A DNA stretch of 64,000 nt from Rhodosorus marinus CCMP1338. Lineage: Eukaryota; Plantae; Rhodophyta. The translations under genes were made by a program, and so were the position numbers. Each line of letters opens with the position of its first letter. Position 1 is the first letter of the stretch. Shown piece after piece: positions 339 to 62,713 of the stretch. Under the pieces are notes generated by a model, which worked only from the letters and a program-made list of their open reading frames with translations, searched no databases and was not told the DNA's origin. The stretch lies in contig JAMWBK010000008.1 of the NCBI GenBank assembly GCA_029953675.1, positions 1-64,000 of the forward strand, read 5' to 3'.

Positions 339-416
339 GCGTACACTTTACTGAAGAACTCCCTATTGGAGCCCATTAAGAAGCAATAAGGATCCTATTG
401 GTCAGCAAAGAAACCC

Positions 417-3400
417 CTAATGGGTTGTGTGGCTACGTTCTAAGATAGGGACGATGTCATAGTCTGCTTCGTCGACACGACGTGCCTGGGTGGCAAGGAT
501 AGCGTTTCCTTTCCACAAAGTGCGGTTCAAGATCGCCCGAGCCTCACTTACTTGCGTTGCCCGCTGATCCAGGTGTATAGTCGCTTCCTTGAGGAACTCA
601 CTCGCTTGTTGTCCCATCTGCCCAAATGTTTCCAGGCAGAAGGGGACGAAGATGTCGTCGTTATGTTCTCCGATACTGTCACGGTATTTGGACTCTTTAA
701 ACTTTTCCGCTTTCCGTGCCGCATACCCGGTCTCCCAAGACGCTTTGTGGAGGTGTGTTCTTTGCAAAGGCGAGGTCACCTTCACATCGATCACGTAGAG
801 CTTGCCTGTTCGTGGGTGTCGGGCTAGAATGTCAGGCCGAAGCCGACTGCCTTGGTAGTGTCCGGTCGGTTCTATTGTCACTTCTAGTCGCCATTGTCTC
901 AGCACTGTCGCCAGGGCGTCCCTGACCATGTTATGCCGAATTGTCCAACTGCCGGTAGAGCTGGTGCAGTGGTGAAGGCGTTGAATGCCTGCAGCGTCGT
1001 GTGGTTGGGAACATATCGTACACGTACTAAGTATTCGTACACCCGGCAGGGGTAATCCCAACAGTTGTCGAAGGCTCAGGTTCAGTTCTCCGCTACTTAG
1101 GCCTCGTCCGTGTTTCCTTGGCAAGTCTCGCAGCCAAGTACCCCCTCCTGATCCCTTGCAGGAGCGTATTCGCGCACGTGCCGTCTCGCTGATCTCCGCG
1201 TTCTCCACCATTTCCTCGAATGCCCGTCGGTGACTCCAGTTGGAGAGGAGTTTTTGGGTTGAACCGATCAAGGGCCTGTCGGGTGGTGTGTGCGGGTTCT
1301 CTGCTTGTTCTTGGCTCTCCAACGATTGCCATTCTGTTAGGCGAAGTATGGGGGCCGGTGTTCCTCGTGCCAGGCAGCGTTTTGAGTGGAGGCTCGCTTC
1401 GATTAGTTGTGCTCCAAGTTGATCCGTCGAGTGGAGCAGGGGTCGAATGTGATGGTGCTCGGTCAGGTTCGTCGACGTGCAGGCATCGAGTAGCGCTCCT
1501 AGGTGGCTAGATCCAGTCCAATTGAGCTTCAGAGTCTGTCGCCAACTGCTGAAGAAGGCGAGGGGTTGTATTCGTGTTCTCATCGCTAGGCCTGCGCCAC
1601 CCCATCGGCAAGGGAGCTGGATCTGCGCTTCGACCACGTCTTTTGCGGGTCCTGTGAGGCCCTGGCCTTCGAGGAGCGAGCCGCACAGTTTGTCGAGTTC
1701 CAGGAGCGAGATGCGATCGGCTTCGCGTGCGAGATTGGCTCCGTATTGTAGGGCGAGCGTGCGTAGAGCAAAGTCTAGACGCGGTCCTGCGCAGTAGCGG
1801 AATAGGCACAGTTTAATTGGTAGCTCAGTGGTCGGTAGACGGATGACCTCTTGGACGAGTTTTCATGTTCTCGTTGTAGCTTCCTGTTCGCGTCTTGGAC
1901 GTAGGTCCGTGTGCCAATAGGGATGGAATAAAGTTGGATTCCGTCCCGGGTGACATGTACGTCGGGAATTTCCCTGTTGACGAGTCTGGTCGTCGGCAGT
2001 TGGAGTCCAAAAAGCTCGCATTTCGTCCTTTGAAGTTGTGCGCCTATTTCGGGGAGGTGGTGCTCGCTCCAGTGTAGCGCTTCTTTCACGTCCTTCAGAG
2101 GGCCAAGTAAGGTGAGGTCGTCGTGGATTGCGCTAAGGGTGATCCTCGGAAACCGGTCTCGTAGTGCTCGTAGGAGTGGGGAAAGGGCGAGCGCGTGTAA
2201 AGCAGGTCCCAACGGATCGCCTTGTTGGACTCCAGTCCAGGCTCGGAGCTGGAGCCAGTCATCGACATCGCTGTCTCGCCATCCGAATTGGCGTGGGGCG
2301 CTCTCGCCTCGTGGTCCGTAGCTCATTGTCATAAGCGACTTCAATTCGGGGAAAGCTAGCTCGATGATACGGTTTGCGAGGCGTCGGTCGATTCTGTTGA
2401 ACGCGTTTGCGAGATCAAGTTTGAGGAGCACGTCATTTGGGCGCGCTGCGAGGTGGGCTTCCGCGAGGTGGATGGCGTGTTCGCAGCCGCCGCTGACCGA
2501 GATGCCGAGTTGTTCCGGGAGCAGAAAGTCGCGAAGGGGCGTGGCGACAGCGCGAAGTGTCCATTGGGTGACGGCCTTCCGCAGTACCTCAGGAATCCCT
2601 AGCGGGCGTAGGCGAAGAGGGTACCCTTGTCTAGCTTCGGCAGACGTTCGCTTGTCTTTCGCGAGGAGTCGGTTGCTGCGCATGGCTTCGAGAAACACGT
2701 CAGGGAAGCTCTCCGGAGTGGTGGCAAGCTTGCGAAGGAAGCGTACAAGTACCGGTTGCGTTGTCATGGTGAGACTTCGCAGATGTTCGGCTTTGAGTCC
2801 ACTCGGCCCGGGGGCTGTGGCGTACGGTAGGTGTTCCAGCGTTGACAGGAGGCTCTCGTCAGAGGCCAAAGTCGGGTCCCATATATTGCGTTGCAGTCCG
2901 TTGAGCTTTGCCTGTAGGGCGTCTTCAAGCTCCGAGGAGAGCGTTGCGGCCTCGTACTCAGGGAAGAGCGTAGTCAGAACGCGCCAGGTGGCAGGAGTCT
3001 TCGAGGCAAGATCGGTGGCCAGTAGGAGTTGGCTAGACTGGGACATGCGTTGAGCTTTGGCGAGTTGTAGGGCTCGTTTCTGTCGGTGGCGGGTCTGAGG
3101 CGGCGAAGGTACGATACAGTTGGTGTCAAGGGTTTTGCTGTGAGCAGTAAGGTGTTCCCACACCGTGGAGAACCTTCCGTCCATAACGGCGAGCATCTGC
3201 GCAGAAGGGGCCAGGTCGCCTGTGTAGCCGAGTGCGAGACTGGGGAGAGCGAAGATGAACAGGCGTGACAGGTTCGGCGCTGACGTATCAAGGGCAAGTT
3301 CCAGGGCTTTCGACATGAGATGGTTCCAGCGTGTTTTCAGGTTATCGGGGACGAATTGGCGAGTAGGCGTCGGAGCCTGAGTCAGCTGCCACCAGCGGTT

Positions 3401-3568
3401 GCCATTATCGGTTACGTTGAGAGTGAAGTCGTGCAGAGACGAGAGCCAGGCGTTCGAGTCGGTCTCGAAGAGTGACTGCGTCGAAGTGGGAGGTCGTTGG
3501 CGACGAGCACGAGCACGGCGGGATGAGCGAGAGCGGTTCGGAGTATATTCGTCTGAGGAGCTGCTCAT
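417..3568 (-). CDS. T-A ORF2: reverse transcriptase plus restriction-like endonuclease, with one 1-bp frameshift near 1860
   Basis: Motifs include APGPSG, LRPLGIPEVLRK, LKLDLANAFN, GVQQGDPLGP, AIHDD, CxxC..HxC, RH, RPDI...IDVKV and PFCLETFG. Adding one A to the A-run near 1860 joins the two ORF-track pieces in frame (HEKLVQEVIRLP...). Confidence 0.88.
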
Positions 3569-5085
3569 GATTGAGTCGACGAGAGGGAGTCGGGCGTGAG
3601 GTCGTCGACGGCGTTGGCAGGCTTAGGGCGCTTAGTGGGTGGAGCCACTTGTCTCTTGTCTTGGGCCGTCGAAAGTCCTTGCATCGGCTCTGCAGGGGTC
3701 ACTGGTTGATCGCTAGTGGTGGAGGGGTCAGGCTCCGAGTCTAGTGGATCACGGGCTGTCGCGGCAGGCGTCTCAGGCGTGTTGTCCTCCCGAGCGGCTG
3801 GGACTTGGGCAGAATCAGCGCTATGCGTAGTCGCTGCGAGGGGTTCCGCACTCTCCCTCTCCAGTGCCGCCGGTTGAGGGTCAGCTACCCGGGTTCGGTC
3901 CAGAGAGCGTGGCTCTCTGCGCTCGGTTGTTGTCGAGTGCTCTGGAAGCTCAGGGTCGGAGAATGGCACGCGCAGGCAACTGTCGGGTGCTCGTTGAGCG
4001 TGAGCGTGGAGGCTGGCCAGGGTGCGATCGAGCTCGGCCCTGACGTGGCCCAGGAGTGCCTCTCGGTTGTTGGGTGGGAGACTCCTGCGATTGGTAACAA
4101 TCCGCTGGATCCGTCGGTAGCGGAGCAGGTTGTGGATCAGTGCAGCGCGGGGATAGTCTGCCGGTTGGTGACGGAGCTTTTCCCTCATGCTCAGGTATTC
4201 GTGTGACGTTGGAGAGAGCTTGACAGCTTGGATACGTTGATCAAGAGGCAGGTGTGCTCCTCTGGTGGGTTCGAAGGCCCCTGCGTTGGTAGCGTCGCGG
4301 AGTAGTTGGAAGGCGGTATGATGAGCGATGACGTGTACATGATGATCAAAGTAGTCCAGCTGGAGCAGCGAATTTTTCTGAAGGCCGGCTAGGCGCTCGA
4401 TATCCCAAGCATGATGGGCCTTGCTTCTGGTGGAGTCCCGAGGTCGAGCATTGAGTAGCACAAATGCATCAACGTCCTTCTGGCTCTGGTACTGCAGCCC
4501 ATGAATGCTCGCGAAAAACGAGCGATTGGCAGCTGCTGGGGTCTGGTTGGCGCGGACACGTGTCGTCCAGCTCATTGGTTGAGGTTGAGCTCGAGTCCTT
4601 GTCCGTGCTTGCTCATTGGCCGTTGCGAGATCTGGGAATGCATTGGAATCGAGATCACGTGTCTCGGGAGATCGCGGGCGGGCTGCTGCAGTGGCGTAGT
4701 TTGCTGGTTCGTAGACAGGGAGGGGGCGTTGTGCCCTCGGGGCAGCTTTTTGTGGCGTCGTAGTCAGATTGTGAAGGAGTTGAGCCTCGGTGCCATTGGC
4801 GTGTGCCTGGGCTAAGAGACCCATAAACCGCAGCATAAGCCCATTGTAGAGCGGGGTCTTATGCTTGGGCGCGTCGAGATGCAGCTTCAGCGCTCCGCAG
4901 CTCAGGTCAATAGCCAAGGGAGTAGGTACGTCGTTGTCTAGTGCAGATGCAGTTGTAGGCTCAGAAACAGGTACGGGCAGAGGCTCGGGTCCGTCTGCCC
5001 TCAGGCTAACGGCCGGGAGGTCTTCCATCGTTGCGTCTGTGCAAAAGCCCCCCCCATCCGGAGGCACGGGCTCGAGAGTAGTCAT
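3565..5085 (-). CDS. T-A ORF1, putative RNA-binding (RRM-like) protein
   Basis: Open frame from the ATG at 5085 (MTTLEP...). The stop overlaps the ORF2 ATG (ATGA). A near-identical copy lies at 27907-29427. Confidence 0.8.
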   Translation of the reverse strand: MTTLEPVPPDGGGFCTDATMEDLPAVSLRADGPEPLPVPVSEPTTASALDNDVPTPLAIDLSCGALKLHLDAPKHKTPLYNGLMLRFMGLLAQAHANGTEAQLLHNLTTTPQKAAPRAQRPLPVYEPANYATAAARPRSPETRDLDSNAFPDLATANEQARTRTRAQPQPMSWTTRVRANQTPAAANRSFFASIHGLQYQSQKDVDAFVLLNARPRDSTRSKAHHAWDIERLAGLQKNSLLQLDYFDHHVHVIAHHTAFQLLRDATNAGAFEPTRGAHLPLDQRIQAVKLSPTSHEYLSMREKLRHQPADYPRAALIHNLLRYRRIQRIVTNRRSLPPNNREALLGHVRAELDRTLASLHAHAQRAPDSCLRVPFSDPELPEHSTTTERREPRSLDRTRVADPQPAALERESAEPLAATTHSADSAQVPAAREDNTPETPAATARDPLDSEPDPSTTSDQPVTPAEPMQGLSTAQDKRQVAPPTKRPKPANAVDDLTPDSLSSTQS

Positions 5086-5183
5086 ATCACTCGATAAGCG
5101 TTCGTAGAAAGAATGAAAGTGTAACTTTATCACCACGATAAACTCCAAAGTCCAACCCCAAATCCCAGACTTTTTACGCCAGA

Positions 5184-5945
5184 CTAACCCCAGACTCCCA
5201 CTGTGGCGTGTAACTGCTTCAGGGCGGCATGTTGCGTCTGCGGCCCAGGCCTTCGCATGGTGCGGATGGGTGTCTCTACACCGTTCTCTGGTACTTCTAC
5301 TGCCGAAACCGCCGCGTAGGTGGGTCTGGGGGTGTCATTCCCAAGGGCCGGGAAAGCCGTCTCAAACCGGACACCCGCAGGGACACCTGTCCCGACCGGA
5401 ACTTGATTGAAGCCCGTTCCGGCCGCAAGTTGATTGACCACCGCCGTCGGCCGGTGATGCGCCGAAGCTCCCGAGGGATTCGAAGTCTGTGCAGAAGCTT
5501 GCCACATGTGGGGCTTCTGTGCAAGTTCCGTGAGGCGGCTGGTGACATTATGTATCTCTGTGGTACTGTTAATTCGCGAGTAGAGATTGAAGACTGCTTT
5601 GTAGAAGTTCGCGATGTCCTGCTCCCCAATTCCGAGGGCGTGATAGCACTGATCGTAGCTTCGAAGTTGGTGGAGGAACGTGTTAGCGGGAGAGGATGAC
5701 GTAGAAGACTCTGTCCGACTCCCCTCCTGGCACGGTTCTTCTGGGCGTAAAGTAGTCGCTTGTAGTCCATCATGTGGCCCATGCCCGTCCTCTCGTTCAG
5801 CAATTGGAGAGGCAGGCAGCATTCCGCTCATTGCACCGGTATTCTTCGAATTCCCCTCCCCAAACGAAGGGGAAGTGCCAGTGTTTGGCATATTGTACCC
5901 CAGGCGAACCAAACCTACAAACTTAATTGCGAACCTTATCCAATA
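5184..5945 (-). mobile_element. 5' end and ORF1 N-terminus (ATG 5891) of a second T family, 3'-truncated
   Basis: The translation (FLHQLRSYDQCYHALGIG...ALKQLHATVG) matches ORF1 pieces at 17741 and 33216. Both ends are bounded by telomere-like units. Confidence 0.8.
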
Positions 5946-5972
5946 ACCCCAGATAACCCCAGACTAACGTAA

Positions 5973-6779
5973 CCGTGAGCTTTATTGGGCACCCCAGACT
6001 AACGTAACCGTGAGCTTTATTGGGCAGTCGCCTAATGCGACGTAACACTAAGCCGATTGCTATCTAGGGAATCACTCACAACAACCCCGCTACCGGGGTC
6101 TCATGCTACGTTCAAAAGAAAAAACAGGAACCAGTGGGTTCTCCAACTGGTCCGCACGTAGAGCGCCTAACCCCAGACTAACGTAACCGTGAGCTTTATT
6201 GGGCAGTCGCCTAATGCGACGTAACACTAAGCCGATTGCTATCTAGGGAATCACTCACAACAACCCCGCTACCGGGGTCTCATGCTACGTTCAAAAGAAA
6301 AAACAGGAACCAGTGGGTTCTCCAACTGGTCCGCACGTAGAGCGCCAAGCGCAATCTCCGCGTTGCCCTGCCATAGGATCCTGTTTAACTGGGATCGTGC
6401 ATCCCTCAGCTCCTCATCTCGATGCAACAAGTGTTTACAACTGTCCCGCAAAAAGTCTTGCGTCAACCTCCCGCTCCGCCCAAAGGTCTCTATCGCGATC
6501 GGGATGAACTTCTCCTCGGGCTTTTCCACACTCATCGCCTCTTTATAGTGCGCGAGCTTGTAGTTCTCCGCCAGTTTCGCTGCATACCCGTTTTTACGGG
6601 TATTAACCCCAGACTAACGTAACCGTGAGCTTTATTGGGCAGTCGCCTAATGCGACGTAACACTAAGCCGATTGCTATCTAGGGAATCACTCACAACAAC
6701 CCCGCTACCGGGGTCTCATGCTACGTTCAAAAGAAAAAACAGGAACCAGTGGGTTCTCCAACTGGTCCGCACGTAGAGC
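5973..6779 (-). mobile_element. Tandem array of four 5'-truncated 3' ends of family T-D (about 18, 158, 415 and 157 bp), separated by single telomere units
   Basis: An identical 3'-UTR sequence restarts after each CCCCAGACTAACGTAACC. The longest copy encodes the endonuclease C-terminus (KFIPIAIETFGR...). Confidence 0.88.
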
Positions 6780-7310
6780 CCAGATTCTCAGGTGCATGAT
6801 GTTTTTCATGTATCACTATTACGAAAGTTCAATGGACCTGAACCTGAAGGCTCGCGCGTAGTTCCTGTACTACAACCAGTAGTACCAAACCGGGAAGTGA
6901 AGTCTGTATTGGGACATCGTCTAGGTGAAAAGGGCCTGAATAAATACTTCGTTTACTTTGAAGGCGAAACAACGGACGATTTGAGATGGTTACCCTACCA
7001 TCAACTACCGCAGAACCAGAATACCAAGAAACGAATTCGGTATTATACAAACCTCCACAAGGCAGCTTCTTCTTCCACCGGATAGTTCTTTCTTGCAGTG
7101 GGGAGGAGTTGTGACGTGCTGACATGACATCTGGCTAAACATATTGGTGAGCTAAAAAAATAACCACCATGCGTACAAAATATAGTGTACGTCTATGATG
7201 CGCCCAGTGGACAAGATATTGTACGAGTACGGACGGGGCTAATAATAGTAGTCTAAAAGGGAAGTTGAACTATTTTGGATCACCAACACGCGTTAATACA
7301 GAACGTGTCA
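6780..7310 (+). mobile_element. Ty3/gypsy chromovirus 3' remnant: integrase tail and chromodomain (6792-7085), polypurine tract (about 7097-7109), putative LTR (7110-7310)
   Basis: HDVFHVSLLRK is followed by a chromodomain-like EVKSVLGHR..YFVYFEG..W segment. GGGGAGGAG precedes a TG...CA-bounded 201-bp segment. Confidence 0.7.
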
Positions 7311-17499: not shown

Positions 17500-19310
17500 A
17501 TTTTGGACGGCTTTGTTTGTGGAAAACAACGGTAAAAGGTTATAAGTAGTTACACGTGATTGTGAAGGAGGTACGCGGGCCGTACCCCGAGCCTCTTGTG
17601 ATCCCGGGGGCCCACACACCTCGGGTACCCGGAAAATAGAGAGGGAGAAAGAGCTGCTGCAACAGCACCAGCAGCACCAGCACCAGCAGCACCAGCAGCA
17701 CCAGCAGCACCAGCATACAGGAGCAGAACAGGACGCAGAGATGCATGCAGAACACCGTGCAGCGGAGCCGGCTACAGCAGACCCAGCTGTCGCCTTTCTC
17801 CACCAGCTGCAGAGCTACGACCAGTGCTACCAAGCACTGGGAATCGGCCAGTCTGACATCGTCGACTTCTACCAGGCCGTCTTCAACCTCTATTCGAGGA
17901 TCAATTGTACGCAAGAACTTCAGGGAGTGACAGGACGTCTGAATGAGCTCGCCAAAAAACCGCATATGTTGCAAGACGGACGAGCCACCACGACCCCGCC
18001 TCAACCCCCGCAGCAGCACCCGCGGACGGCGGCAGTCAATCAACATGCACCGGAACCGATCAACAATCAACTTCCGGAGGGACAGGTGTCCCAGTCTCAC
18101 TGGACTATGCCACGGCCTTCCCTGTTGTCGGGACCAGCAGCACACGGCCAACGTACGCTCAGCGCACTGTCCAAAATACTCCAGCTCGAGAATCAGAGGC
18201 TCAAATCCGACCAGCCGGACGCCCGGGCCCACAGAGCCAGCAGGCAGCGCTGCGACAGCTGCACGCCACCGTGGGCGGGTCCTCCTGGGGACTTGAGACC
18301 AAGCCGATCCTAGCCACCCTTCGAAACGTCCGCCCCCCAAGGCAGGATGATGTGGCACCTTCGGACTTCACCATCGTCCTCTGCCGCGCGCTGGGAATCC
18401 CAGCCTCTCACATCGCGCATGTGGACTTCATCTCTTCACATTTAAGCTGGACTTTACTAGCATAGCCTGAAGCGCTACGCAAGGCGTGAAGATGAACTAA
18501 ATTAAGCTTGCTCTGCCATCCGGATGCAATCCCAATTGTGCAGAGCGCTATCGCCCGAGGTGTTTTCAGAACAGGGATCTTTGGATCGTTCACACTGAGG
18601 CATCCTGACCAGCAAGTGACTCTGCACACAGGACAGGGACTGGAGGCTGGCAATCTGTTGGGCTACAACGAAAGGCAAAGGATCGCCCAAGAGGATATCC
18701 CAGCCCAGACGCTGCAACGGGCCATACAACAGATCATCAGGATTCGTGCGAGGCTCGGAAAGAGGCATCTGTCGTTCTCTACTCTAGCAGCCATCCATGA
18801 AACGCTGGAAGAGGGTCTACGAGCGTTGCGAGACCTACAACATCCACCAGAAGTCGTCGGGGAGAGTGTGGAACCCCTTGAGACTGCAGCAGCTACAAAC
18901 GCAGCCCCAGAAGCCTCGGCCCCACACGGAGCCGCACAGGCAGCCCACGGGACCGTTGACGCTTCGGGTGACTCCAGGGCAACGTCTCAACTACCACGGG
19001 AGGATGCCGAAGAGGAAAATCCACACGCCGAGCTCCCACACAACCTTCCGGAGCCTCCCCAACAAAACCGCACACGTGTGACATGTGAAAGCGGCAGGCA
19101 CATGCCATGACACCGAGATGATTCTCGCAGCCCCAGAAGCACCTCAGCGTGATACCCATGCCCAGACCCACTCCGTAGCCCACGATAATGCGATGGACAT
19201 CCAGACCAGTCAGGAAGACACAACCCAATAATGCCGAGCCGACGTAGGGGAATCAAACGCAGACGGGAAGAGCCTCTTTTCTTCTCCAAGCGACAGGACT
19301 GGATTGTGCT
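17500..19310 (+). mobile_element. Family T-G 5' portion: degenerate ORF1 with polyQ/H tract, TAATG overlap and first residues of ORF2
   Basis: Starts after variant telomere units (17472-17499). The ORF1 pieces align with 33216-34031, and ORF2 begins MPSRRRGIKRRREEPLFFS like the copy at 32977. Confidence 0.85.
18449..18501 (-). mobile_element. 53-bp family Y 3'-end insertion with 7-bp TSD TTAAGCT inside T-G ORF1
   Basis: TSD at 18442-18448 and 18502-18508. Removing the insert restores SSHLSLLCHPDAIP. Confidence 0.85.
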
Positions 19311-19903
19311 TGCGTTGATCTCCACATCTCGAGTTGTTATTGTCAGATTGCGGAAAGGGCTTGTCTGGGCATGTCCAATAGATAGTATACATGAACTGAA
19401 AAAGTCAGAAGAAGAAGAAGACGTACTGCTTATCGGAGTACGTCCGTCACGGTCATCGCAGAAAACCTTTTGGCCGGCTATTGTGTGTGGTTCCGTTGCG
19501 TCTCGGGAGCTGTTTTTGGAGCTGCTATCCAGCGTGAAGAGAATGAGGAATCAGTGGCAAGATGATGTAATGCTCGGACCAGTCAACAGGGACAACAGAA
19601 GCCCGAGCGCGGGCGGTGCGCCAGCATTCGAGAACAGGCGGCTTGAGGAAATCCTCTATGTGGCTCAGAACTCACCGCAACGAGATGCATCCTCGCATCG
19701 CAGTGTACAATTTGTTATTGCAAACAACGTAGAAGAAGACTTAACGCTGAACGGTTCAGAGCTGAAGAGCGGTATATGGAGGAGGGAACCACCTCTGAGG
19801 ATTGAAGCAAACTCGGCCGGTTTTTTTGAAAGCGATGGTGGCCGTGAACTGACAGCAGATGTGCACGGGAGTGTCTCTTACAGAGCAACGTCGACTATGG
19901 CAG
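19311..19903 (+). pseudogene. Host gene fragment ending in an aegerolysin/Cry34-like beta-sandwich, truncated by a telomere unit
   Basis: RSVQFVIANN...LTL..SELKSGIW...PP.RIEANS.G.FES...GSVSY pattern. An upstream GLVWA...FWPAIV segment is weakly PWWP-like. Confidence 0.5.
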
Positions 19904-19925
19904 AACCCCAGACTAACGTAACCCC
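19904..19925. repeat. Interstitial telomere unit joining two non-telomeric sequences
   Basis: aaccccagactaacgtaacccc. Confidence 0.9.
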
Positions 19926-21846: not shown

Positions 21847-21859
21847 GGTAAGCGAGTTA

Positions 21860-27695: not shown

Positions 27696-27793
27696 TTCAG
27701 ACCACAACCCATTAGGGGTTTCTTTGCTGACCAATAGGATCCTTATTGCTTCTTAATGGGCTCCAATAGGGAGTTCTTCAGTAAAGTGTACGC
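27696..27793 (+). mobile_element. 98-bp 3'-UTR-only copy of T-A
   Basis: Reverse complement of about 339-430, with telomere units on both sides. Confidence 0.88.
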
Positions 27794-33985: not shown

Positions 33986-33989
33986 CGTA

Positions 33990-39151: not shown

Positions 39152-40833
39152 GTAGCCTTTATTGGGCAGCTACCTAATGTAGCGCATCACACGATCACTA
39201 CGTACGCACTAACCAAACCTGGACTCCCTGTCCAGGAGTCTCATCTAAATTCTACTTAGGGGGAAATATCGGTCTATCTGCGCGATCTTTCTCGATCGCG
39301 TGTTCAACAAGCGCAGCATTGTGCTGCCACAAAATGCGGTTTAGTTGACCCCTCACCGACGATAGATGGGACTCACGATCATGCAGGTGCGCGCTCGCCG
39401 TTCGAAGAAATTCAAGGCTTGCCTGGCCCATTCGACCAAATGTCTCAAAAATGAACGGCACAAGAACCACATCTCGGTTTTGCCCCCTCAGCACTTCCTT
39501 ATAATGCAACGCCTTCGCTTGTTCGGCCTGTTTCGCAGCATACCCGCAGTTCCAGCTCGTATGTCTCAACTGATGCCTTTGAAGTGGCGATGTCACCATC
39601 ACATCCACCACGTACACGCATCCGCTCGTCGGGTGTCGTGCAACGATGTCTGGGCGAATTCCAGACCCGGCAAAGAACCCCTCAGGCTCTACTTGTATCT
39701 CCGTGAAACTCCATAGGTGTAACCATCGACTCAGTTCTACCTTTAGCTCGTCGTGCCTCTTGGTTCGCATCCCTGATGAGGTCCTGCAGTGGTGCAGCCG
39801 CTGGATCCCACGCACATCGTGTGGTTGCTCGCAGACCGTGCATGTGTGTGACCGCCCTAGTCCTTGCAGTGGTAGCCCTAGAAGCATCCGCATGCTCCAC
39901 AACATCTCATTTCGCGTCAACTGCCGCGGCCCTGTACTAGGACAGTCGCGTAGCCAGACCCCGCACCCCGTTCCAGATGCCGATCGGATCCTCGCCCGGT
40001 CTAGGTCGTCCAGTGTTGAATCTCCAGTAAGCTCCTCAAAGGCTTGTCGGTGACACTCTCGAGAGAGCGTTTTTTGGATCGGACCGTCAAACCTTTGGGT
40101 ACCTCCTGTGTCTTCCGCTGTGCCTTCCGCCGAGTCCTCCAGCGGTTGCCAATCGGCCAGCCTCTGGATCGGTGCACTGGTCGTCGCTGGCAAACGTCGT
40201 CTAATTGCGCGACTTGCCTCCACCAGTTGCCAAGCAAGTCCATCAGTTGTCCATCCAAGTCGCACCCGTCGCAGCGATTCTCCTTGTGCTGCCGCAATAC
40301 ACTCCTGGGAAAGCCGTTCGAGGTAGCGTGATTCAGTGGTGTTCTCTTACAGGCTTTGTTTCCACCCTGCATGGAAGGCAACTGGTTGAATTCTCGTGCG
40401 CGTGGCAAAGCCAAGTCCTCCCCATCGACATGGGAGTCGAATCTGTTTCTCAACCGCTGCAGCCTTACGTGCGGTGATATCCTGGTGTTGACATAGGCCT
40501 CCACACAAGCCTTCAAGCTCCGAGAGGGTGATCGCGTCCGCCTCGCGGGCAACGGTACGTCCAAGGGGGTACGCCAGCCCACGTGTATGATAATCGAGCC
40601 TTGTGCCTGCGCAGTACCGAAAGAGGGCCAGCTTGACTTGGAGTTCAGCATCGGGGAGTCGCTGAATCGATTTGACCAGGTTCGCATGTCGCGTTTGAAT
40701 AGCTCGACATTCTTCTTCCGCAAACACCCGAGTTCCAATTGGTATGGAGTACAACGTAGTCCCGGCGCGAGTCACTTGAATCTCAGGGATATCCAGGTTA
40801 ATCACCCTCGGCGTGTCCAGTCGTGGTGCGTAT
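39152..40833 (-). mobile_element. 5'-truncated family T-E, second copy
   Basis: Inverted match to 25418-26925, extended by about 160 bp. Confidence 0.9.
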
Positions 40834-40864
40834 AGTCTGGGGTAACCCCAGACTAACGTAACCC

Positions 40865-44374: not shown

Positions 44375-44513
44375 GCCTCTGTGAATTTTCCGTTGTCTTG
44401 TGGGGTTCTTTGTTAATATTCCGTGCAAATTAAATACAGTATCGACAAGTAAACGGTTTGCAAGCAGCAACTTCACCGAGGGGTGAACCTGTTCCGTCTC
44501 CACGCCGGCAGTG

Positions 44514-45523
44514 CTATGTGCCACGATGCCTCGCATACGAGTTTGGAAGAAATCTGGCACGCGAGGCCGACGTGATGACCAGATATCACCTGGAAATTCT
44601 CTTCGGAGGTCTCGCTACGACAGCTGTAGAGGACAATGAGTACGCAGAGCTGATCTCGGACCAAATCGCTCTGCCCTGCCGCTGGGGAGGTTTGGGTTTC
44701 GCTACTCGAAAGCGCGTCCAACCCATCGCGTTTTACTCGTCATGGAGAAACACCTTCCGGAACAATGAAGATGAATGGCCATACCTGACTGAACTAGAGC
44801 GGGAGGTTACGGCAGAACGCTCACAAGACACATACGAGCCGATGGATCAACGATGGTCGACTGCACAGCTGCCGGACCAGATCTGTGCATCGTCGCGAGC
44901 AATACAACGGAGGCTCGGACCAGAAACCCCGCCGCGGATCTTGGCACTGACTACCCTGCAACAACCGCGAGAAACATGTCTTCGAAGCGCACCGGGCGAG
45001 ACTGCAGCTTGGAATAATGGTTCAATACAACAAACCCTCTCTCGAGAGGCACACCATTGTGCATTCCAAAAGCTGGTCACCAACCCACGAATCTCCCCTG
45101 AAAACCGAGCTCGAATACGGTCTGCCGCGGGATCCGGGTCGGGAGTCTGGCTACGTGAAATACCAACGCTGACACCGAAAAAATTGAGTGCGGTTGAGAT
45201 GCAGGAAAACGTTCGACAACTGCTGGGTCTGCCAATTCCGGGATTGCGGACCACCGAGAAGTGCACTAGTTGCCGGAGTAAACACGGAAGGACTGGGGTA
45301 CAACGGTTGCATCACTGCCCAACATCAACTGGACTGTGGCAACGTAGGCATGACGAAATCTGCAGAGAGCTGGCACGGTGGCTAAGGCGATGGAACTTCA
45401 TGGACGTAGAGCAAGAACCTGAGGGGTACTTCGAGAACTACGGACTGAGACCTGATATCGTTGCTAGACATCCGAGGACCAAACAAAGGTATGCGCTGGA
45501 TGTGACGGTGGTGTCACCATTAC
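44514..45523 (+). mobile_element. Family T-H ORF2 fragment, truncated at both ends
   Basis: LPCRWGG, CTSC..HHC and RPDI..LDV. The 3' side is cut by the X tail. Confidence 0.85.
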
Positions 45524-51676: not shown

Positions 51677-51813
51677 ATTCCCAGCGCTTGGTAGCACTGG
51701 TCGTAGCTCTGCAGCTGGTGGAGAAAGGCGACAGCTGGGTCTGCTGTGGCCTGCTCCGCTGCAAGGTGTTCCCCATTCCTCTCTCCCTCTTGTGCTGCTC
51801 CCCTGTGCTGGTC

Positions 51814-51852
<39 letters not shown>

Positions 51853-52017
51853 TAGCAGTTCTTTCTCCCTCTCCATCTCGCGGGTACCCGAGGTGTGTGG
51901 GCCCGCGATCACAAGCGGCTCGGGGTACGGCCCGCGAACCTCCTTCACAATCATACTTGTAACTGTTAATCAGCTTTTACCGTCGTTTACCACAAACAAA
52001 GCCGTCCAAAAACCAAA
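51677..52017 (-). mobile_element. T-G 5' end and ORF1 N-terminus (ATG 51954) with (CAG)n
   Basis: Matches 17500-17840. Preceded on the minus strand by telomere units at 52018-52043 and 52066-52083. Confidence 0.85.
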
Positions 52018-54149
52018 ACCCCAGACCCCAGACTAACGTAACCGTAAGCTTACCCCTGTCCAGGGAGACTAACGTAACCCCAGTAGTACTGCTACGGTCC
52101 AAACGGTCCATACGAGACTAAACCACCGAGGTGTGTCGTCAAGGGACTTTCTAAGGAGCCATGTCGCATTATTGCCCTTTAGGGGATCGATTGGTAGAAT
52201 CTATACCCGACCCAAGCTTGCTCGCAAACCGTAAGAATCGATGCCAATGAATCCTGCCATAGAGTCCAAAAAACCCGAACCGCGGAAAACCTACACGTGA
52301 GTAACCAGCCGCAGGGCTTCAGACGATATTAGTAGAAACCATTCACAGGTCATCATCACATACCTTGTCATCTACCCGTCAGAATCGAACGAATGGTTTA
52401 ATCAGAATCCGCGGAATGATGGAATTTCCCGAACGCTGGTTGCGTTCAGAAATGGTAGTTCTCCGTGATGTGGATTGTACTACTTGTGGTATCAGCTTTG
52501 CAGACTGAGAAACTCCTGATCGGAGATGCCATGGACAGAGGTTTTAGAGTACTGGCTTGGTCTGCGAAAGGCCCTTGACAAAAGCTTCCCAAACCGACTC
52601 CGCTGAAACCTCATGATCGTTCATAAACAGCTCCGAAAGCAGAATAATCCAGTTTGCACTTTCGCTAAACTGTGCACTCATTATTTGCAACTCTTTCGTC
52701 CCCCGGCAGCTAGGGGGCACAGTGGGCACTGTCAATAAGAGCTAAGTACCGAATGAAAACGGACAACGTAGAATCGGATCGACTTTCAGGTCACCTGCTA
52801 CCATTCGAAATATATGGTTTATTCGACCGTGTGCTGTACTGCAAGAGATATCGGAGCATGAAACGTTTCGTTCAGCTTTGCCTTTGGCTCCTTCAATTAG
52901 ACCGCACTCGCATAGAAACAAGTGAAGAGCGGAAGTGTGTCCGCGGAGATGCTGGCACTGAGTTCGGAGGTACAGATCAGATTAGTATGCCCAGATAGTT
53001 TCGCTCAAACAAAATCCGCGCGGGAAAACCAGCTTTCGGCGCTCGCGGATCAGCGCATACTCTGCGTCTAGATCCACTTCTTATGATGCTATGGAGGAGT
53101 TGCATGCACACCAAAAAAGAAAAGCAGTTGTCATGAGTAGAATTCCCTCGTCCTAAACGTCATCGCAAAACGTACCGTAGTCAATCCTGCAAAAGCGTGA
53201 TGGGATCTGTATTTGGAGCCGCGCGGACTTGCAACCAAAAGGACTCGAGGCTCTCGTTAGCTTCCAAGCGCTTCTGAATCCAAACTTAAAGGCGACGATG
53301 CAAGGTGTCTATGTATCTGTCGTTCGTTGCCTCTCATCCACTCATGTGCGAGTTCACTACTCGTGGGATAGAGCTCTCCAGGATGCTTCCACTTTCCAAT
53401 ATGTTCCCATCAAAGTTCACCTCCATGAATCTAGCATCCAGATCACCCTCTCGAGTAGCCCTAGAGCTTAGCAACCACACCCTAGCGCTACTTGAGAGGG
53501 GAATGCAACTCTGACTGATCATCATTATCCCTCCTTCCCAAGAGTCCTATGCCCAAACAAAATTCAGAGAAATTCAACCCCTCCAAAAATCATCTAATTC
53601 AAAAAAAACTTACTGGCAATATTTTATAACGAAATAAACTTATGGAAGTCCATCTTTTTATTATAAACAAATATGAAAAAGGAGAAACCCAAAATTCAAA
53701 ATATTTCCTTGACCTGAATATTATCTTACTATTTTTAGATAAATATATCAATAATAAATATTCTATGAAATTCAATATATATATTTCATCCAAGCCATAA
53801 AATATACAATAATCGAATCATTGATTTCTTAGGTTGAAGGGGAAATATTACTGAAATGGTTGCTGTAAACGAGAAAGTCTCCCAAATTAGAGATTTGTTC
53901 GCGCGGTCTGTTTTCGTGGTAGACGACAAGCTTTGGCTGGCTTTCGTGTTTTGGAAGGGGCTTGGGAATCCGCTCGCGTGAGTTGGGGTGAGAACTACGG
54001 ATTTCGATGAATCCAGATGTGAGACTGCTACTTGGGAAAGACGCCCGTGGCCTCTTTTCTCGAGCCTATATAATGAGAGGCTTGGGCACAGTCGCGAGAG
54101 TTGTATGGATGTACGGGTATTGTGGCTTAGGAGCTAGAGGAAGTTGAAG

Positions 54150-58735: not shown

Positions 58736-59079
58736 AGCGACCCTCTAGACGACGTTACGGAAGGGGGTATACAGTGGACACGCCTTACACACTGCCCGGT
58801 TCCCACACGGCGCTTTGTGCCCCGCGTACACGTCCATACCTGGAGCCGCCTCCTCCGTGCTGCACTTGAACTTTCCATGGACAGAACCGCACCAACAAAC
58901 GCCAGTCTGCTGCTTGGGGTTACGTTAGTCTGGGGTTTCTTAACGCATAGATAGATTGCTTCTTCCTTCCTTACGGGCTCCACTAGGGAGTCCTCTAGTA
59001 AAGCGTTCACGGTTACGTAGTCTGAGGTAACCCTTGTTGGAGCGGTTCTGTCCATGGAAAGTTCAAGTTAGTCTGGGGT
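58736..59079. mobile_element. Patchwork of short T fragments and telomere units in both orientations
   Basis: An ORF2 N-terminal piece (58736-58915), a telomere unit, a T-I 3' UTR (58938-59005), a variant unit, an inverted 37-bp recopy of 58864-58895, and another telomere unit. Confidence 0.75.
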
Positions 59080-59950
59080 AACCGTAAACTTTACTGGGCA
59101 GCTGCCTACTGCAGCGTATCACTATTTCTACTGCTATCTAGGGAAGTGTTTACTCTAACCATGCTACCGGGGTCTCATGCTACGTTCTGAAGAAAAAAAA
59201 GGAACCAGTGGATTCTCGAACTGGTCCACTCGCAGAGCGCCTACCGCTATCTCTGCGTTACCTTGCCAAAGTTTCCGGTTCATCTGAGCCCTGACATCGC
59301 TCAGCTCCGCAGTCCGGTGCAATAGGTATTTGCAGCTATCTCGTAGAAATTCCTGTGCTATGGGGCCTGTCCGCGCAAAGCTTTCGATCGCGATTGGAAT
59401 GAACTTGTCGTCTGGCCTCTCAACCGACGTCGCCTCTTTGTAATGTGCTATTTTCCACCTCTCCGCTCGCTTCGCTGCGTACCAATTCTCTGAGCTACTA
59501 CCCTTCACGTATTTCTCCTGCAGTGGCGAGGTAACCGTCACATCCAGCGCATACCGTTGGAAAGTCCTCGGGTGAGTGGCGATGATATCTGGTCTTAGCC
59601 CGTAATTCTCAAAGTATTTCTCAGGTTCTTGCTGTATGCCCAGGAAATTCCATCTATTCAGCCAGAGCACGAGCTCCGTGCAGATTTCGTCATGCCTCCG
59701 CTGCCAGAGTCCCGTCGAGGTTGGGCAGTGGTGAAATCTTTGTACACCTGTAGTACTATGTGTACTATTGCAACTAGTACACTTCTCCGTCGTCCTCAGT
59801 CCCGGGATCGGCAGGCCCAACAGTTGTCTAACGCTCACCTGCAGTTCCGTCGAGTCCAGTTTTTTTTAGCGCCAAAGTCGGCATTTCTCGCAGCCACACT
59901 CCCGATCCCGAACCGGCCGCAGACCGGATTCGAGCACGGTTTTCGCGGGA
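59080..59950 (-). mobile_element. 5'-truncated family T-J with intact 3' UTR
   Basis: Endonuclease ORF at 59164-59838. 59560-59950 is the inverted match of 61625-62050. Confidence 0.88.
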
Positions 59951-60059
59951 ACCCCAGACTAACGTAACCGTGAACGCTTTACTAGAGGACTCCCTAGTGG
60001 AGCCCGTAAGGAAGGAAGAAGCAATCTATCTATGCGTTAAGAAACCCCTAGTGGGTAAC

Positions 60060-62053
60060 CCCATACTGCGACAACTCGCGACTGCTCCAGAGAATTTTTC
60101 ATCTCCTCTGACCCGTGCCCTGCGCAGCAGCAGACTCTTGCCGTTCGTGAAGCCTACCAAGGACGCAGCTCCCCAGGAACGCCCAGGAGTTCGACTCATC
60201 GGAGTACCAGAAGTTCTGCGTAAGGTGGCAACCCAGTGGATCCTCCGACAGGTTACAGACCGAATCCGCGAACTGCTCGTCCCCTTACAACTAGGCATTG
60301 GAGTAAGCGGAGGATGCGAACGCTCACTCCATGCGATTCAGGCCCATCTCGCCTGCGAACCTGAAGCAGTGGTCCTTCGACTCGACCTTGAGAACGCCTT
60401 CAACCGCATAGACCGCCGGATTGCTAAGCAACTGCTGGACCACCATTTTCCCGAGCTGAAAGCGATATACCGGCTTGGCTACGGCACTGACAGCTCGGAC
60501 TCCCCTAAGCTCTTCGGCTGGCGCGCTACTCACGGACCAGACCAGGTCAATACGAGTCGACTGACGCTGCAGGCCACAACCGGTGTACAACAAGGCGATG
60601 CCCTCGGACCGGTCCTACATGCGCTATCCTTGGCCCCCTTCTTGGAAGCACTGCACCGAAAAGCGCCTGATCTAACGACCGTAGCCATCCACGACGACAT
60701 CACCATCGTGGGACCCCTGCAGCCGCTGAAGGATATACTCCACTGGGGGCAGACTATGCTCCCTGCCCTCGGTGCCAGACCGCAGCTAAGCAAGTGGACT
60801 CTCTACGGACGCACCCTGACGACAAGTAGACTAATTAATCGGGACATCCCTGGCGTACATGTCAACAGAGACGGCGTGACGATACACTCGATCCCGCTAG
60901 GCAACCGGGAATACCTTCAGGAAGAGTGCCGTGCAATGCAAAACAACCACAACAAACTTTTTAAGGAAATAGCACGACTTCCTGACAACGAACTTACGAC
61001 ACAGCTCGCCCTCTTCAGGTACTGCACTGAAACCAGGCTCGACTACATTCTACGCTGCCTAGCGTACCCGTTTGGCAGAACTTTGGCACGCGAGGCGGAT
61101 GCCATGACCAGATATCACCTGGACATCCTATTCGGAGGCCTCGCTCCCGCAGCAATCGAGGACGAGGAGTACCTACAACCGGTTTCGGATCAGATCGCGC
61201 TCCCTTGCCGCTGGGGCTGGGGGGGACTGGGGTTCGCTACTCGCACCCGTATACAGCCAATCGCCTTCTACTCGGCGTGGACAAACACTTTCAGAAGCAA
61301 TCAAGGGGACTGGCCGTACGTCACTGCACTACAGAGGGAGGTTGCTACAGGCGGAACTCCAGACGAGCACACACCCACGGGACTACAATGGTCAACCGCA
61401 CAACTAGCGGATCAGATCCGTGCATCTACCCGAGCAATTCTACGGCGATTCCGCCCAGAAACCCCGCCCCGGATCAGGAGACTAGTCACCCTGCAGCAAA
61501 CGAGGGAACCCCCCCAAGGAGGCGCACCAGAAGACCCAGCAGCTTGGAATATTGGTTCAATACAACAGACCCTCTCTCGAGAGGCACACCATACGGCATT
61601 CCAAGAGCTGGTCACGAATTCACGAATTTCCCGCGAAAACCGTGCTCGAATCCGGTCTGCGGCCGGTTCGGGATCGGGAGTGTGGCTGCGAAAAATGCCG
61701 ACTTTGGCGCTAAAAAAAACTGGACTCGACGGAACTGCAGGTGAGCGTTAGACAACTGTTGGGCCTGCCGATCCCGGGACTGAGGACGACGGAGAAGTGT
61801 ACTAGTTGCAATAGTACACATAGTACTACAGGTGTACAAAGATTTCACCACTGCCCAACCTCGACGGGACTCTGGCAGCGGAGGCATGACGAAATCTGCA
61901 CGGAGCTCGCGCGCTGGCTGAATAGATGGAATTTCCTGGGCATACAGCAAGAACCTGAGAAATACTTTGAGAGTTACGGGCTAAGACCAGATATCATCGC
62001 CACTCACCCGAGGACTTTCCAACGGTATGCGCTGGATGTGACGGTTACCTCGC
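60060..62053 (+). mobile_element. Family T-J ORF2 (RT through the endonuclease start), truncated at both ends
   Basis: LRLDLENAFN, GVQQGDALGP, AIHDD and LPCRW. There is an A8-run frameshift at 61712-61719. Ends in a telomere unit at 62054-62076. 59970-60060 is a minus-strand T-I 3' UTR. Confidence 0.9.
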
Positions 62054-62076
62054 CTGGGGTTACGTTAGTCTGGGGG

Positions 62077-62685
62077 TAGCTCTGCACTGAGCTGGCGCGT
62101 TGGCTTAACAGATGGCAGTTCAGAGATGTTCAACAAGAACCTACAGACTACTTCACGAACTCGAATCTACGACCTGATTTGGTAGCTATACACCCTAGAA
62201 CATGGCAAAGATATGCGATTGATGTGACGGTGGTGTCACCCCTACAGGCGAGACACCTACCCAACAGCAAAGACAACAATGGTTATGCAGCAAAACAGGC
62301 GGAGCGTTGGAAACTTGCACAATATAAGGAGGCGATGATGACAGAGCATCCAGATGACAAACTGATTCCGATTGCGATAGAAACCTTCGGCAGAACAGGG
62401 CAGATGACTCAAGACTTTCTCCGTGATGGCTGTGGGCACATGCTCACTAAGCAGTACGAGTTGAGCAACGTGCGGGCTCAACTAAACAGAACACTTTGGG
62501 CGGGGAATGCAGAGCTCGCGTCAGGGGCTTTGCGCGTGGATCAGTCGGACCAGCCACGGATCCCTTATTTTTCTTTTTTATCGTAGCTAGAGACCCCGGG
62601 AGACGGGGTTAAACTCCCACATTTCTCTAGATAGTGATAGAATTAGTGTTGCGCTGCGTTAGGCAGTTGCCGAGTAAAGTTTACA
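62077..62685 (+). mobile_element. 5'-truncated family T-B, second copy
   Basis: Near-identical to 24810-25400. Telomere units follow at 62686-62713. Confidence 0.9.
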
Positions 62686-62713
62686 GTTGCGTTAGTCTGG
62701 GGTTACGTTAGTC

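Follow-up and report, generated by a model that had tools for sequence, protein, structure and literature searches.

The window analysed here covers the opening 64 kb of contig JAMWBK010000008.1 from the red alga Rhodosorus marinus CCMP1338, and it begins in a terminal telomere, with 21.1 perfect copies of CCCCAGACTAACGTAA at positions 1-338. We found no published report of this 16-nt repeat, and reviews describe red-algal telomere data as fragmentary. We counted 45 occurrences of the core of the unit, GTTACGTTAGTC, in the window, where 0.15 would be expected. Interstitial tracts number about 29 and are found on both strands. Exactly one unit is present in 20 of these 29 tracts, a proportion that random insertion into a 21-unit telomere alone would not predict.

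The bulk of the repeats in the window belongs to a single clade of non-LTR retrotransposons, here called T (Table 1). Part of the T copy number stems from duplication and not from transposition, as seen in two of the C1 copies (157 and 158 bp) and in segments that are 98-100% identical. In all, the DNA covered was the window (one chromosome end), the adjoining 1.6 kb and a 21.5-kb stretch from the interior of the genome; this internal stretch contained zero telomere units and zero T elements. T elements are absent from the annotated protein set of the assembly.

Table 1. Telomere, T elements and their parts in the 64-kb window
Feature	Position	Strand	Remarks
Terminal telomere	1..338	-	21 perfect 16-nt units at contig start position; G-strand TTACGTTAGTCTGGGG runs toward contig start
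Family A, full-length, 4.8 kb	339..5163	-	3' end against terminal telomere; 5' end ATTTGGGGTTGG shared with copy at 27828
Conserved 3'-UTR hairpin	358..372	-	5-bp stem, NNTAG loop; equivalent in all T types
Family A ORF2, ~1050 aa	417..3568	-	RT (RVT_1, IHDD), then CCHC + RLE; ATG overlaps ORF1 stop
Family A ORF1, ~506-527 aa	3565..5148	-	Without known domain
H-type 5' fragment	5197..5943	-	5' UTR + ORF1 N-terminus, 3'-truncated, then degenerate short units
Four family C1 copies	5975..6781	-	16, 158, 415, 157 bp; mutually 100% identical; one unit between each; proximal edge of terminal array at 6781
H-type element	17500..19903	+	5' end intact, decayed; ends against inverted unit 19904-19925; upstream, H-type 3' remnant + unit at 17400-17499
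Family B	23381..25400	+	5'-truncated at RT aa 508; Z insertion 24390-24686 with 11-bp TSD
Family E	25419..26925	+	5'-truncated; 3' end ...GGCTACGGGG
Family C2	26943..27679	+	5'-truncated
Family A 3' fragment, 98 bp	27696..27793	+	
Family A 5' part	27828..29633	+	ORF1 + 70 aa of ORF2; 99% identical to 3358-5171; ends against inverted units 29634-29673
Family F	29674..31334	-	ORF1 62% aa identical to A; truncated at ORF1 stop/ORF2 start, unit-capped
K-type fragment	31566..31981	-	Starts after two units (31982-32017)
Family C2, 247 bp	32018..32264	-	100% identical to 27433-27679; joined directly to internal GGGG of next element
Hx	32265..33984	-	H-type ORF1 C-terminus + ORF2 aa 31-248, both ends truncated
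Family D, 133 bp	33993..34125	-	Between two partial units (GGGGTTACG / GGTTACGT)
Family E2	34135..34818	-	87% aa identical to E
Family D2 3' fragment	34837..34960	-	Mutated unit
Old E2-like 3' fragment	37960..38061	+	Then decayed unit (TGACAAGATGGGG)
D3/K-type RT fragment	38703..39127	-	Starts after unit 39128-39151
Family E, second copy	39152..40841	-	98% identical to 25421-26945; preceded by unit 40842-40865, which caps duplicated gene fragment
Family K	44500..45522	+	Cut off by Z insertion at 45522
H-type 5' fragment and mini-copy	51677..52065	-	Fragment 51677-52016, 22-nt mini-copy 52044-52065, each unit-bounded
Hx-like fragment	58748..59010	+	Unit cap 58915-58937, then family A' 73-bp copy
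Family D3	59080..59949	-	5'-truncated; 3' end meets inverted unit
Family A' copy, 85 bp	59970..60054	-	
D3-family body	60064..62053	+	RT aa 277 to RLE, 3'-truncated, capped by unit 62054-62075; 73% aa identical to 840-aa MMETSP transcript ORF
Family B2	62076..62685	+	92% aa identical to B; then 1.75 units (62686-62713) holding Z insertion

Architecture and families of the T elements

A T element consists of ORF1 followed by ORF2, and ORF2 runs from a reverse transcriptase (RT) through a CCHC to an R2-like restriction-like endonuclease (RLE). The initial annotation had described two ORFs and an RLE retrotransposon, and both descriptions hold; the two ORFs were demonstrated for family A, in which the ORF1 stop and the ORF2 start overlap as ATGA (3565-3568). 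The ORF1 of family A has only three relatives among 1.84 billion representative proteins; T ORF1 is confined to the T lineage. In ORF2, Pfam RVT_1 was matched in three copies (E=2e-13, 1e-10 and 1e-8) and the IHDD motif is present, with a marginal alignment to the R2 RT (E=0.002). A profile of the C-terminal 250 aa matched the R2 RLE region in the PDB (E=3e-10), and the top seven Foldseek PDB matches of an AlphaFold (AF2) model (pLDDT 83) were all R2. Conserved here are CCHC, RH(N/D), E, PD and D-V-x-V...K; among the alignment columns E, D and E are invariant, and C, C, RH and K near-invariant. The elements have no LTRs, and copies ranging from 16 bp to 4.8 kb have common 3' ends. The RVT_1 matches, the profile, the predicted fold and the catalytic columns show T to be a non-LTR retrotransposon whose ORF2 encodes an RT and a PD-(D/E)xK RLE. 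Fully open ORF2 frames were not found among the T copies in the window, and that of family A carries a single frameshift near 1858, in an A4 run of the ONT assembly. T-type ORF2 transcripts are found in MMETSP data at 73-77% aa identity, one of them with an 840-aa open frame. In one MMETSP-derived contig a C1-like 3' end is followed by AGTCTCCCCC... and not by the telomere unit; since this contig starts with a Y fragment (see below), it looks chimeric.

Full-length elements have a G/T-rich 5' end. Near the end of the 3' UTR, two hairpins precede an A(A/G)TAAAG box, after which 5-9 nt close with 1-4 G; in family A the 19 nt between the conserved hairpin and the 3' end hold first TCTTC and then the AGTAAAG box. 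Across the T types this hairpin is 96.7% paired, with compensatory changes in three of its five pairs. Neither the observed covariation score nor the percentage of paired cells was matched by any of 500 shuffles, and two pair-count measures were matched by 10/500 and 4/500.

Clustering of the terminal 150 nt at <90% identity separates 11 groups (A, A', B, C1, C2, D, D2, D3, E, E2 and H), so the earlier figure of about ten 3'-UTR types holds. The 10-11 or so 3'-UTR types are not on one level, however, but group as sub-families under three deep lineages: A/A', E/E2 and B/C/D/K. Between deep lineages aa identity is 40-50%, and dN/dS between T families is 0.13-0.24. In a neighbour-joining tree of the RLE domain covering T, Y and Z, T is monophyletic with 100% bootstrap and Y and Z together are its sister. 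The tree, the aa identities and the dN/dS values support the proposed family radiation, in which the T clade appears to have diversified into about ten sub-families within three deep lineages without loss of the telomere target. The distant ORF2 matches (E=2e-9) include a Diplonema protein named at its source 'SLACS reverse transcriptase', the only hint of a link to the CRE clade.

Junctions with the telomere repeat

The shared 3' box (TAGG-N9-ARTAAAK) gave 19 exact T-type sites in the window against about two expected in total, and three short copies (5975, 52044 and 38061) bring the canonical 3' ends to 22. All 22 continue as G(1-4) and TTACG... in a single orientation: at least 16 nt of the unit follow in 18, a remnant of 4-9 nt in three and a decayed unit in one. 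The T sense strand is thus continuous with the telomere G-strand, its 3' end toward the chromosome end. The number of G before TTACG is constant per family, being GGGG in both E copies, G in B and B2 and in the two C2 copies, and GG in the four C1, two A and two A' copies. Since this number is fixed across independent copies, these G belong to the element and the target starts at T1. At the 5' side, about 17 of 20 junctions come after GGGG plus 0-4 nt (T, TT, TTA or TTAC). Of the others, two lie behind TTACG(T) and one behind an internal GGGG with no unit. The initial annotation had read the 3' ends as passing through G(1-4) into the telomere and truncated copies as almost always starting after GGG(G)(TT), and had pointed to a B-E-C-A-A array at 23381-29633. 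All this was confirmed, with single units between B, E, C2 and A and partial units before the last A. Within the window, the T elements are specific for the telomere repeat.

Besides T, the window contains the RLE lineages Y and Z, which have the ORF2 architecture of T and 22-31% aa identity to it; Y also shares the AGTAAAG 3' box. Only one of six Y copies and one of seven Z copies have a 3' end adjoining a telomere unit, and their insertion sites are varied. The shared telomere target described earlier therefore stands for all T types in the window, but not for Y and Z. Since these insert elsewhere in the same window, they provide an internal control for T specificity. It could be argued that ordinary non-specific retrotransposons pooled in a permissive subtelomere, the units coming from repeated breakage and telomerase healing. 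Junctions of the healing type, where unique DNA or a truncated element meets ...GGGG and a unit, do exist (19926, 29674, 40866, 52084, 58914 and 62053). However, healing caps any break sequence and cannot give 22 of 22 intact 3' termini at phase T1 in one orientation; Y and Z lack the unit association in the same DNA, and 5'-truncated copies start directly after GGGG(TTAC), as insertion into the repeat would leave them. We regard such an origin as scarcely credible. Very probably, this subtelomere was built by one T clade of non-LTR retrotransposons inserting only into the 16-nt repeat.

A second question is how many of the insertions were independent. If the arrays grew mostly by recombination, break-induced replication (BIR) or segmental duplication, the word 'community' would overstate independent targeted transposition. 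The near-identity (98-100%) of 25421-26945 to 40658-39132, of 27433-27695 to 32264-32002 and of the C1 copies would fit such growth, as would the period-179 and period-35 tandem structure in 5956-6346, and D-loop/BIR amplification has been documented for MoTeR (PMC7367193). Against it, the ten 3'-UTR types have differing 5' truncation points and different neighbours, and even the two E and the two C2 copies differ in their 5' ends and downstream partners. Families that are 50-60% different in amino acids with dN/dS <0.25 must, moreover, have replicated as active lineages. Growth mainly by duplication thus seems to us doubtful, though not far-fetched.

Insertion and rearrangement

Because the unit is long and asymmetric, the phase of a junction can be read, as it cannot with repeats of 5-7 nt, and nick sites and stagger can thus be deduced from sequence. 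From orientation and junction phase alone, we infer C-strand-primed TPRT at GGGG|TTAC. T RNA would be bound through its 3' hairpins, and the RLE would nick the C-strand at 5'-GTAA^CCCC-3' (GGGG|TTAC on the G-strand), freeing a 3'-OH that could prime reverse transcription of the T RNA. The G-strand would be cut 0-5 nt downstream and the cDNA end joined at this cut, frequent incomplete copying leaving 5'-truncated copies. As a result, the element sense strand would extend the G-strand, with its 3' end toward the chromosome end. This polarity bears on nuclease-free end-addition with the chromosome 3' end as primer, as in Drosophila HeT-A/TART or endonuclease-deficient Penelope-like elements, which the head-to-tail arrays at the chromosome end might bring to mind. 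G-strand priming would point the element 3' end to the centromere, whereas it is observed toward the terminus; T RNA, having the sense of the G-strand, cannot pair with a G overhang; and an RLE with conserved catalytic residues is present and under purifying selection. End-addition is therefore highly improbable.

Several T elements are 3'-truncated and capped by a telomere unit, and several telomere junctions are head-to-head. The capped copies could have formed when a chromosome end eroded or broke and new telomere was added, and breaks in interstitial units are probably the source of inversions and captured gene blocks. Inverted junctions and some of the mosaic structure might instead be Nanopore assembly artefacts: the assembly is ONT-based, mis-joins classically arise from subtelomeric repeats and fold-back reads, and there are five head-to-head junctions in 64 kb. 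The junctions nevertheless lie exactly at telomere-unit boundaries between otherwise coherent arrays, and similar rearrangements have been shown experimentally at MoTeR telomeres (PMC7367193). We consider artefacts of this kind quite unlikely; they would touch the rearrangement story only and leave the specificity finding intact.

The near-universal spacing of elements by one unit might be more than a passive remnant and follow from a rule, by which the T community would actively sculpt the subtelomere. The nuclease might require two adjacent units, co-resident families cutting or filling longer tracts until uncleavable singles remain; alternatively, the preferred nick could lie at the first boundary beyond non-telomeric DNA. 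Although we put this forward tentatively and would not expect it to hold, such a rule would mean that the T community drives inversions, gene-block capture and capped truncations. The arrays would then form a self-renewing buffer between genes and telomere, a red-algal counterpart to those of silkworm and Drosophila, and T read-through transcripts would be TERRA-like.

Comparison with known systems

Telomere-targeting retrotransposons are known from fungi, silkworm and Giardia. We found no literature report of them in red algae, nor of comparable diversity among RLE telomeric elements. With our results, the known range of telomere-specific retrotransposition comes to include red algae, and its targets an unusually long repeat of 16 nt. 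In addition, telomere-specific T and non-specific Y and Z, which share architecture and genome, form a comparison set for target choice by RLE elements.

GilM and GilT of Giardia resemble T in being non-LTR elements of the RLE type and in forming head-to-tail arrays where chromosomes end. Their tandem arrays are not known to have intervening telomere units; a truncated copy is telomere-capped, and unit-by-unit insertion is not known. R2 (8gh6, 8ibw, 9dou, 9nl2/3) shares with T the order RT, CCHC, RLE and the same fold, a structured 3' UTR that is presumably protein-bound, a precise 3' junction without poly(A) and a sequence-specific multicopy target. Unlike T, R2 is a single-ORF element with an N-terminal zinc finger/Myb and a 28S rDNA target. 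The N-terminal 240 aa of T ORF2 hold a single Cys, with no zinc-finger pattern and no Pfam match even at E<=10, and a Myb motif was not detected in T ORF2; with this and two ORFs, T lacks the architecture typical of the R2 clade.

MoTeR1/2 of Magnaporthe oryzae, FoTeR of Fusarium oxysporum and Cnl1 of Cryptococcus are telomere-targeting RLE elements grouped with CRE/SLACS/CZAR (PMC12857005, PMC7367193), and interstitial tracts, capped truncations and rearrangements occur together in MoTeR arrays as they do in those of T (PMC7367193). Like T, these elements have an RT followed by an RLE, insert into telomere repeats in a fixed orientation, form mixed head-to-tail arrays with short telomere tracts between the copies, include 5'-truncated copies, carry variant telomere-like repeats at full-length 5' ends, and occur as telomere-capped truncated copies in rearranged, gene-capturing subtelomeres. 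The polarity, however, is opposite: MoTeR 5' ends lie nearest the chromosome end and FoTeR 3' ends run into TAACCC, whereas T 3' ends lie nearest the end and are followed by the G-strand. T thus lacks the MoTeR/FoTeR polarity, a trait of those telomeric members and not of the whole CRE clade. T further differs in its red-algal host, 16-nt target unit, two ORFs and three deep lineages with about ten sub-families against one or two, and MoTeR interstitial tracts vary from half a unit to more than 20 where those of T mostly hold one.

The initial annotation had characterized known telomeric elements as one or a few families, which is fair for RLE elements but not for the APE-type TRAS and SART elements of the silkworm (Bombyx mori), a multi-family telomeric community. 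SART1 and TRAS resemble T in being many co-existing telomere-repeat-specific non-LTR families with two ORFs, and SART-type elements have the polarity of T as well, with the first nick in the C-strand and a sense strand that runs on from the G-strand. SART1 and TRAS differ in having an N-terminal apurinic-like endonuclease (R1 clade), poly(A) tails and a 5-nt TTAGG target, where T has a C-terminal RLE and no poly(A). With no Pfam match for an APE domain at the ORF2 N-terminus and no A-tract at any T 3' junction examined, T lacks these hallmarks of R1-clade telomeric elements. Judging from its orientation, then, an RLE lineage may take on SART-like, C-strand-primed polarity, and one target can sustain its radiation into many families, in parallel to the APE-type elements of the silkworm.

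Telomere repeat and target specificity

Contig JAMWBK010000008.1 is chromosome-scale (2,117,290 bp), and the window starts at its position 1, where 21 perfect copies of CCCCAGACTAACGTAA fill positions 1-338. Read 5' to 3', the G-rich strand, TTACGTTAGTCTGGGG, points toward the contig start, as is normal for the telomere of a left chromosome end. Beyond this terminal tract, about 29 short telomere tracts are found on both strands, and the 12-nt core of the repeat occurs 45 times in the window against 0.15 expected. Telomeres in Rhodosorus marinus appear to consist of the 16-nt repeat TTACGTTAGTCTGGGG, a unit far longer than the motifs given for other red algae, for which telomere data are fragmentary according to a 2020 review. 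The motif was absent from the searchable literature; the genome paper, which reports the use of Nanopore reads for the CCMP1338 assembly (GCA_029953675.1), mentions telomeres and describes neither the repeat sequence nor the elements considered here. A metagenome scan for the unit returned 32 single chance matches, with neither tandem arrays nor related loci.

The 3' ends of the telomere-targeting (T) families are tied to one phase of this repeat. All 22 canonical T 3' ends in the window, counting very short copies, pass through one to four G residues into TTACG... on the same strand. Independent copies of one family always have the same number of G residues, and families differ in it, so these residues must be copied from the element; what derives from the target always starts at the first T after the GGGG of the unit (T1). 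At the opposite end, about 17 of 20 truncated copies have their 5' junction after GGGG plus 0-4 nt. A 3' box, TAGG-N9-A(A/G)TAAA(G/T), occurs 23 times against about two expected, and 19 exact matches are T-type ends.

Two other lineages with a restriction-like endonuclease (RLE), Y and Z, act as in-window controls for this specificity. Z (3' end ...CCGATTAAACCATTCGTTCG) is an RLE retrotransposon that is not telomere-specific and occupies seven different insertion contexts; an 11-bp target duplication, ATTCCGGGACT, marks one insertion, one copy lies within a telomere unit in opposite orientation, and two copies abut in inverted orientation at 48118/48119. Y, also a non-specific RLE lineage, has a variable (AGTAAAGTCC)n 3' tail and six insertion contexts, and an AGTAAAG box is common to Y and the telomeric families. 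Across 21.5 kb of internal sequence from this genome, the unit, the 3' box and coding similarity to T, Y or Z are all absent.

Coordinates of elements, junctions and genes in the window
Feature	Coordinates	Strand	Remarks
Family A copy adjoining telomere	339-5163	minus	ORF1 + ORF2
Family A ORF1	3565-5148	minus	
Family A ORF2	417-3568	minus	Pfam RVT_1 domain
Y copy	20324-22103	minus	inverted repeat with the 714-bp copy, 99% identical
Y copy	22644-23357	plus	714 bp
Other Y copies	9242-9710, 31367-31561, 41790-42305, 58500-58745		
Z copy	45523-48118	minus	
Z copy	48119-49503	plus	
Z copy	62714-64000	minus	
Other Z copies	8102-8852, 9959-10309, 24390-24686, 56098-56553		
Head-to-head telomere junctions	19904-19925, 29634-29673, 40833-40865, 59067-59083, 60055-60063		
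1340-aa ORF	11012-15034	plus	single exon; signal-peptide-like start, Gly-rich block, Thr-Pro repeats
STEAP-like metalloreductase gene	54150-55649	plus	F420_oxidored + ferric reductase domains; annotated protein P0112
Two long overlapping ORFs	49444-51532	minus	313 and 470 aa; between H-type 5' fragment and Z copy

Element proteins, 3' hairpin and family diversity

In family A the ORF1 stop and the ORF2 ATG overlap as ATGA. The reading frame of ORF2 has a single defect, a shift by one base at an A4 run (1855-1862, minus strand), which may be a sequencing error given the Nanopore assembly; the terminal copy would then be intact. Past the frameshift, the C-terminal region carries C-x2-C-x12-HHC, RH(N/D), E, RPD and D-V-x-V...K. 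When seven copies from the window and six distant relatives were combined into a profile of this region, it matched the endonuclease part of solved R2 proteins (E=3e-10), and the seven best PDB matches of an AlphaFold model of the region (pLDDT 83, pTM 0.82) are R2 structures (E ~3e-7, TM 0.5-0.6). Together, the RVT_1 domain, the C-terminal motifs and the R2 profile and fold matches identify the T elements as RLE-type non-LTR retrotransposons. ORF1 is without a known domain, and Pfam even at E<=10 gave nothing usable. Among 1.84 billion representative proteins it has just three relatives, which lie on contigs from JGI/IMG and Logan, each some 2 kb long. At the N-terminus of ORF2, Pfam at E<=10 was equally uninformative, no zinc finger was found and Myb was not detected; a Myb-like W-x19-W-x19-W was rejected because its first tryptophans are not conserved beyond the lineage, and only a PT(R/L)xxVP...W motif is shared. 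An apparent "ORF0" upstream of A (5184-5912) proved to be the 5' part of an H-type element rather than a third A ORF.

Rfam and tRNA scans of the sequence were empty. The 3' UTR of all types, and of an MMETSP-derived transcript, contains a hairpin (5-bp stem, NNTAG loop) some 20 nt before the 3' end. The stem is 96.7% paired and shows compensatory changes in three of its five pairs; a second hairpin upstream aligned less well. When both helices were scored jointly, the covariation score and the percentage of paired cells were matched by none of 500 column shuffles and two pair-count measures by 10 and 4 of 500, and every measure lay above all slid controls. By analogy with R2, the hairpin is probably the protein-binding site.

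Over the last 150 nt, types A, A', B, C1, C2, D, D2, D3, E, E2 and H separate at less than 90% identity, B2 groups with B at 95%, with A and A' reaching no more than about 50% against the other types. A supposed A' body at 60064-62053 belongs to the D3 family and does not go with the A' 3' UTR. Amino acid identity in the RLE region is 49% between A and E, 38-49% between A and the B/C/D/K group, 41-50% between E and that group and 62-92% inside it, and every T family is 22-31% identical to Y and Z. In a neighbor-joining tree of this region (Kimura distances, 242 columns, 300 bootstraps), T was recovered at 100%, Y+Z at 98% and T+Y+Z at 80% against 15 external relatives. Between-family dN/dS is 0.13-0.24, which argues that the T families diverged while functional. 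MMETSP data contain T-type transcripts, one 77% identical to A at the amino acid level and another with an 840-aa open frame 73% identical to D3; the best relatives outside Rhodosorus-type data (sponges, tardigrades, dinoflagellates and further assemblies) are 25-31% identical. In a transcript contig from JGI 3300016967 (L001, 1-4187), a Y-like fragment is followed by a T-type ORF2 and a C1-like 3' end, after which comes AGTCTCCCCCGAGG... and no telomere unit; the contig could be a chimeric assembly or a read-through across an array.

Arrays, capped ends and host genes

The 29 interstitial tracts, short stretches of units away from the terminal telomere, hold one full unit in 20 cases, about two in three and less than one in five or six, with a maximum of 2.25. 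This distribution is not predicted by random insertion into a 21-unit telomere. Candidate explanations for the single-unit spacing are that the first boundary following non-telomeric DNA is preferred, that tracts with at least two units become saturated or are collapsed by the nuclease, or that it arises by one-unit duplication, by template jumping or by breakage of longer interstitial tracts as in MoTeR telomeres, where tracts of at least three repeats are unstable (PMC7367193). Extra short units (TCTGGGG, TTAGTCTGGGG, TTATCTGGGG) occur at full-length 5' ends in six cases and on none of the truncated copies.

Four T copies are truncated at the 3' end, where they pass into a partial unit that stops at GGGG and then one full unit; the joints often fall at G/T microhomology, and the sequence lost is present in intact relatives. 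Four blocks of unique or Y-derived DNA likewise end in a partial unit (GGGG) and a full unit. These capped truncations resemble the outcome of erosion or breakage with a new telomere added afterwards, and the window reads as several former chromosome ends stacked with host genes in between (an SDR gene, a STEAP-like gene and a 1340-aa orphan ORF). At five head-to-head junctions, G-strand telomere meets C-strand sequence or an antisense element. They could be errors of the Nanopore assembly, or genuine inversions or fusions that arose where interstitial units had broken. Twin priming was rejected for the inverted segments since its geometry is wrong: there are units in between, and no inverted piece lies 5'-ward of a sense piece.

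The STEAP-like gene has a paralogue at 0.6 Mb on JAMWBK010000001.1, to which this subtelomeric copy is 61% identical. The 1340-aa ORF, which had no Pfam match and no homolog among 5.8 billion proteins, may encode a subtelomeric surface or secreted protein. The 3' end of the short-chain dehydrogenase gene and its downstream region are duplicated with 99% identity (40866-41159 and 43478-44532), and the duplicate runs straight into a telomere unit, resembling a healed chromosome break. At 35017-35263 a 27-bp sequence is present in 9 tandem copies (97% matches), and at 35694-36480 lies a tandem duplication of 387 bp that includes Z-like endonuclease fragments. The two overlapping ORFs on the minus strand showed no similarity to T or other element proteins and no Pfam family.

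Proposed insertion mechanism and known telomeric elements

We infer the whole insertion mechanism from sequence. The sense strand of the T elements runs on into the G-strand with the 3' end toward the terminus, so the cDNA would be continuous with the distal C-strand and a C-strand nick would be required, the 3'-OH of which would prime reverse transcription of T RNA. As the target part always begins at T1, the nick would be placed at 5'-GTAA^CCCC-3', and the 5' junction phases would put the G-strand break 0-5 nt beyond it. The flanks of a D copy (33993-34125), GGGGTTACG and GGTTACGT, would fit insertion into a 6-nt remnant with duplication of TTACG, supporting a small stagger.

This polarity, with the 3' end facing the terminus, agrees with that of silkworm SART. 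It is opposite to that of MoTeR, the 5' ends of which are closest to the chromosome end (PMC7367193); in FoTeR, TAACCC follows the 3' ends. Telomere-repeat-specific non-LTR retrotransposons acting by target-primed reverse transcription are already known among RLE elements (MoTeR, FoTeR, Cnl1) and APE elements (TRAS, SART), as well as GilM and GilT, and the T clade appears to be a new example of them. It is set apart by its red-algal host and 16-nt target, by the combination of an RLE with SART-like polarity, by two ORFs with an orphan ORF1 and a covarying 3' hairpin, and by its radiation into about ten families alongside non-specific sister lineages.
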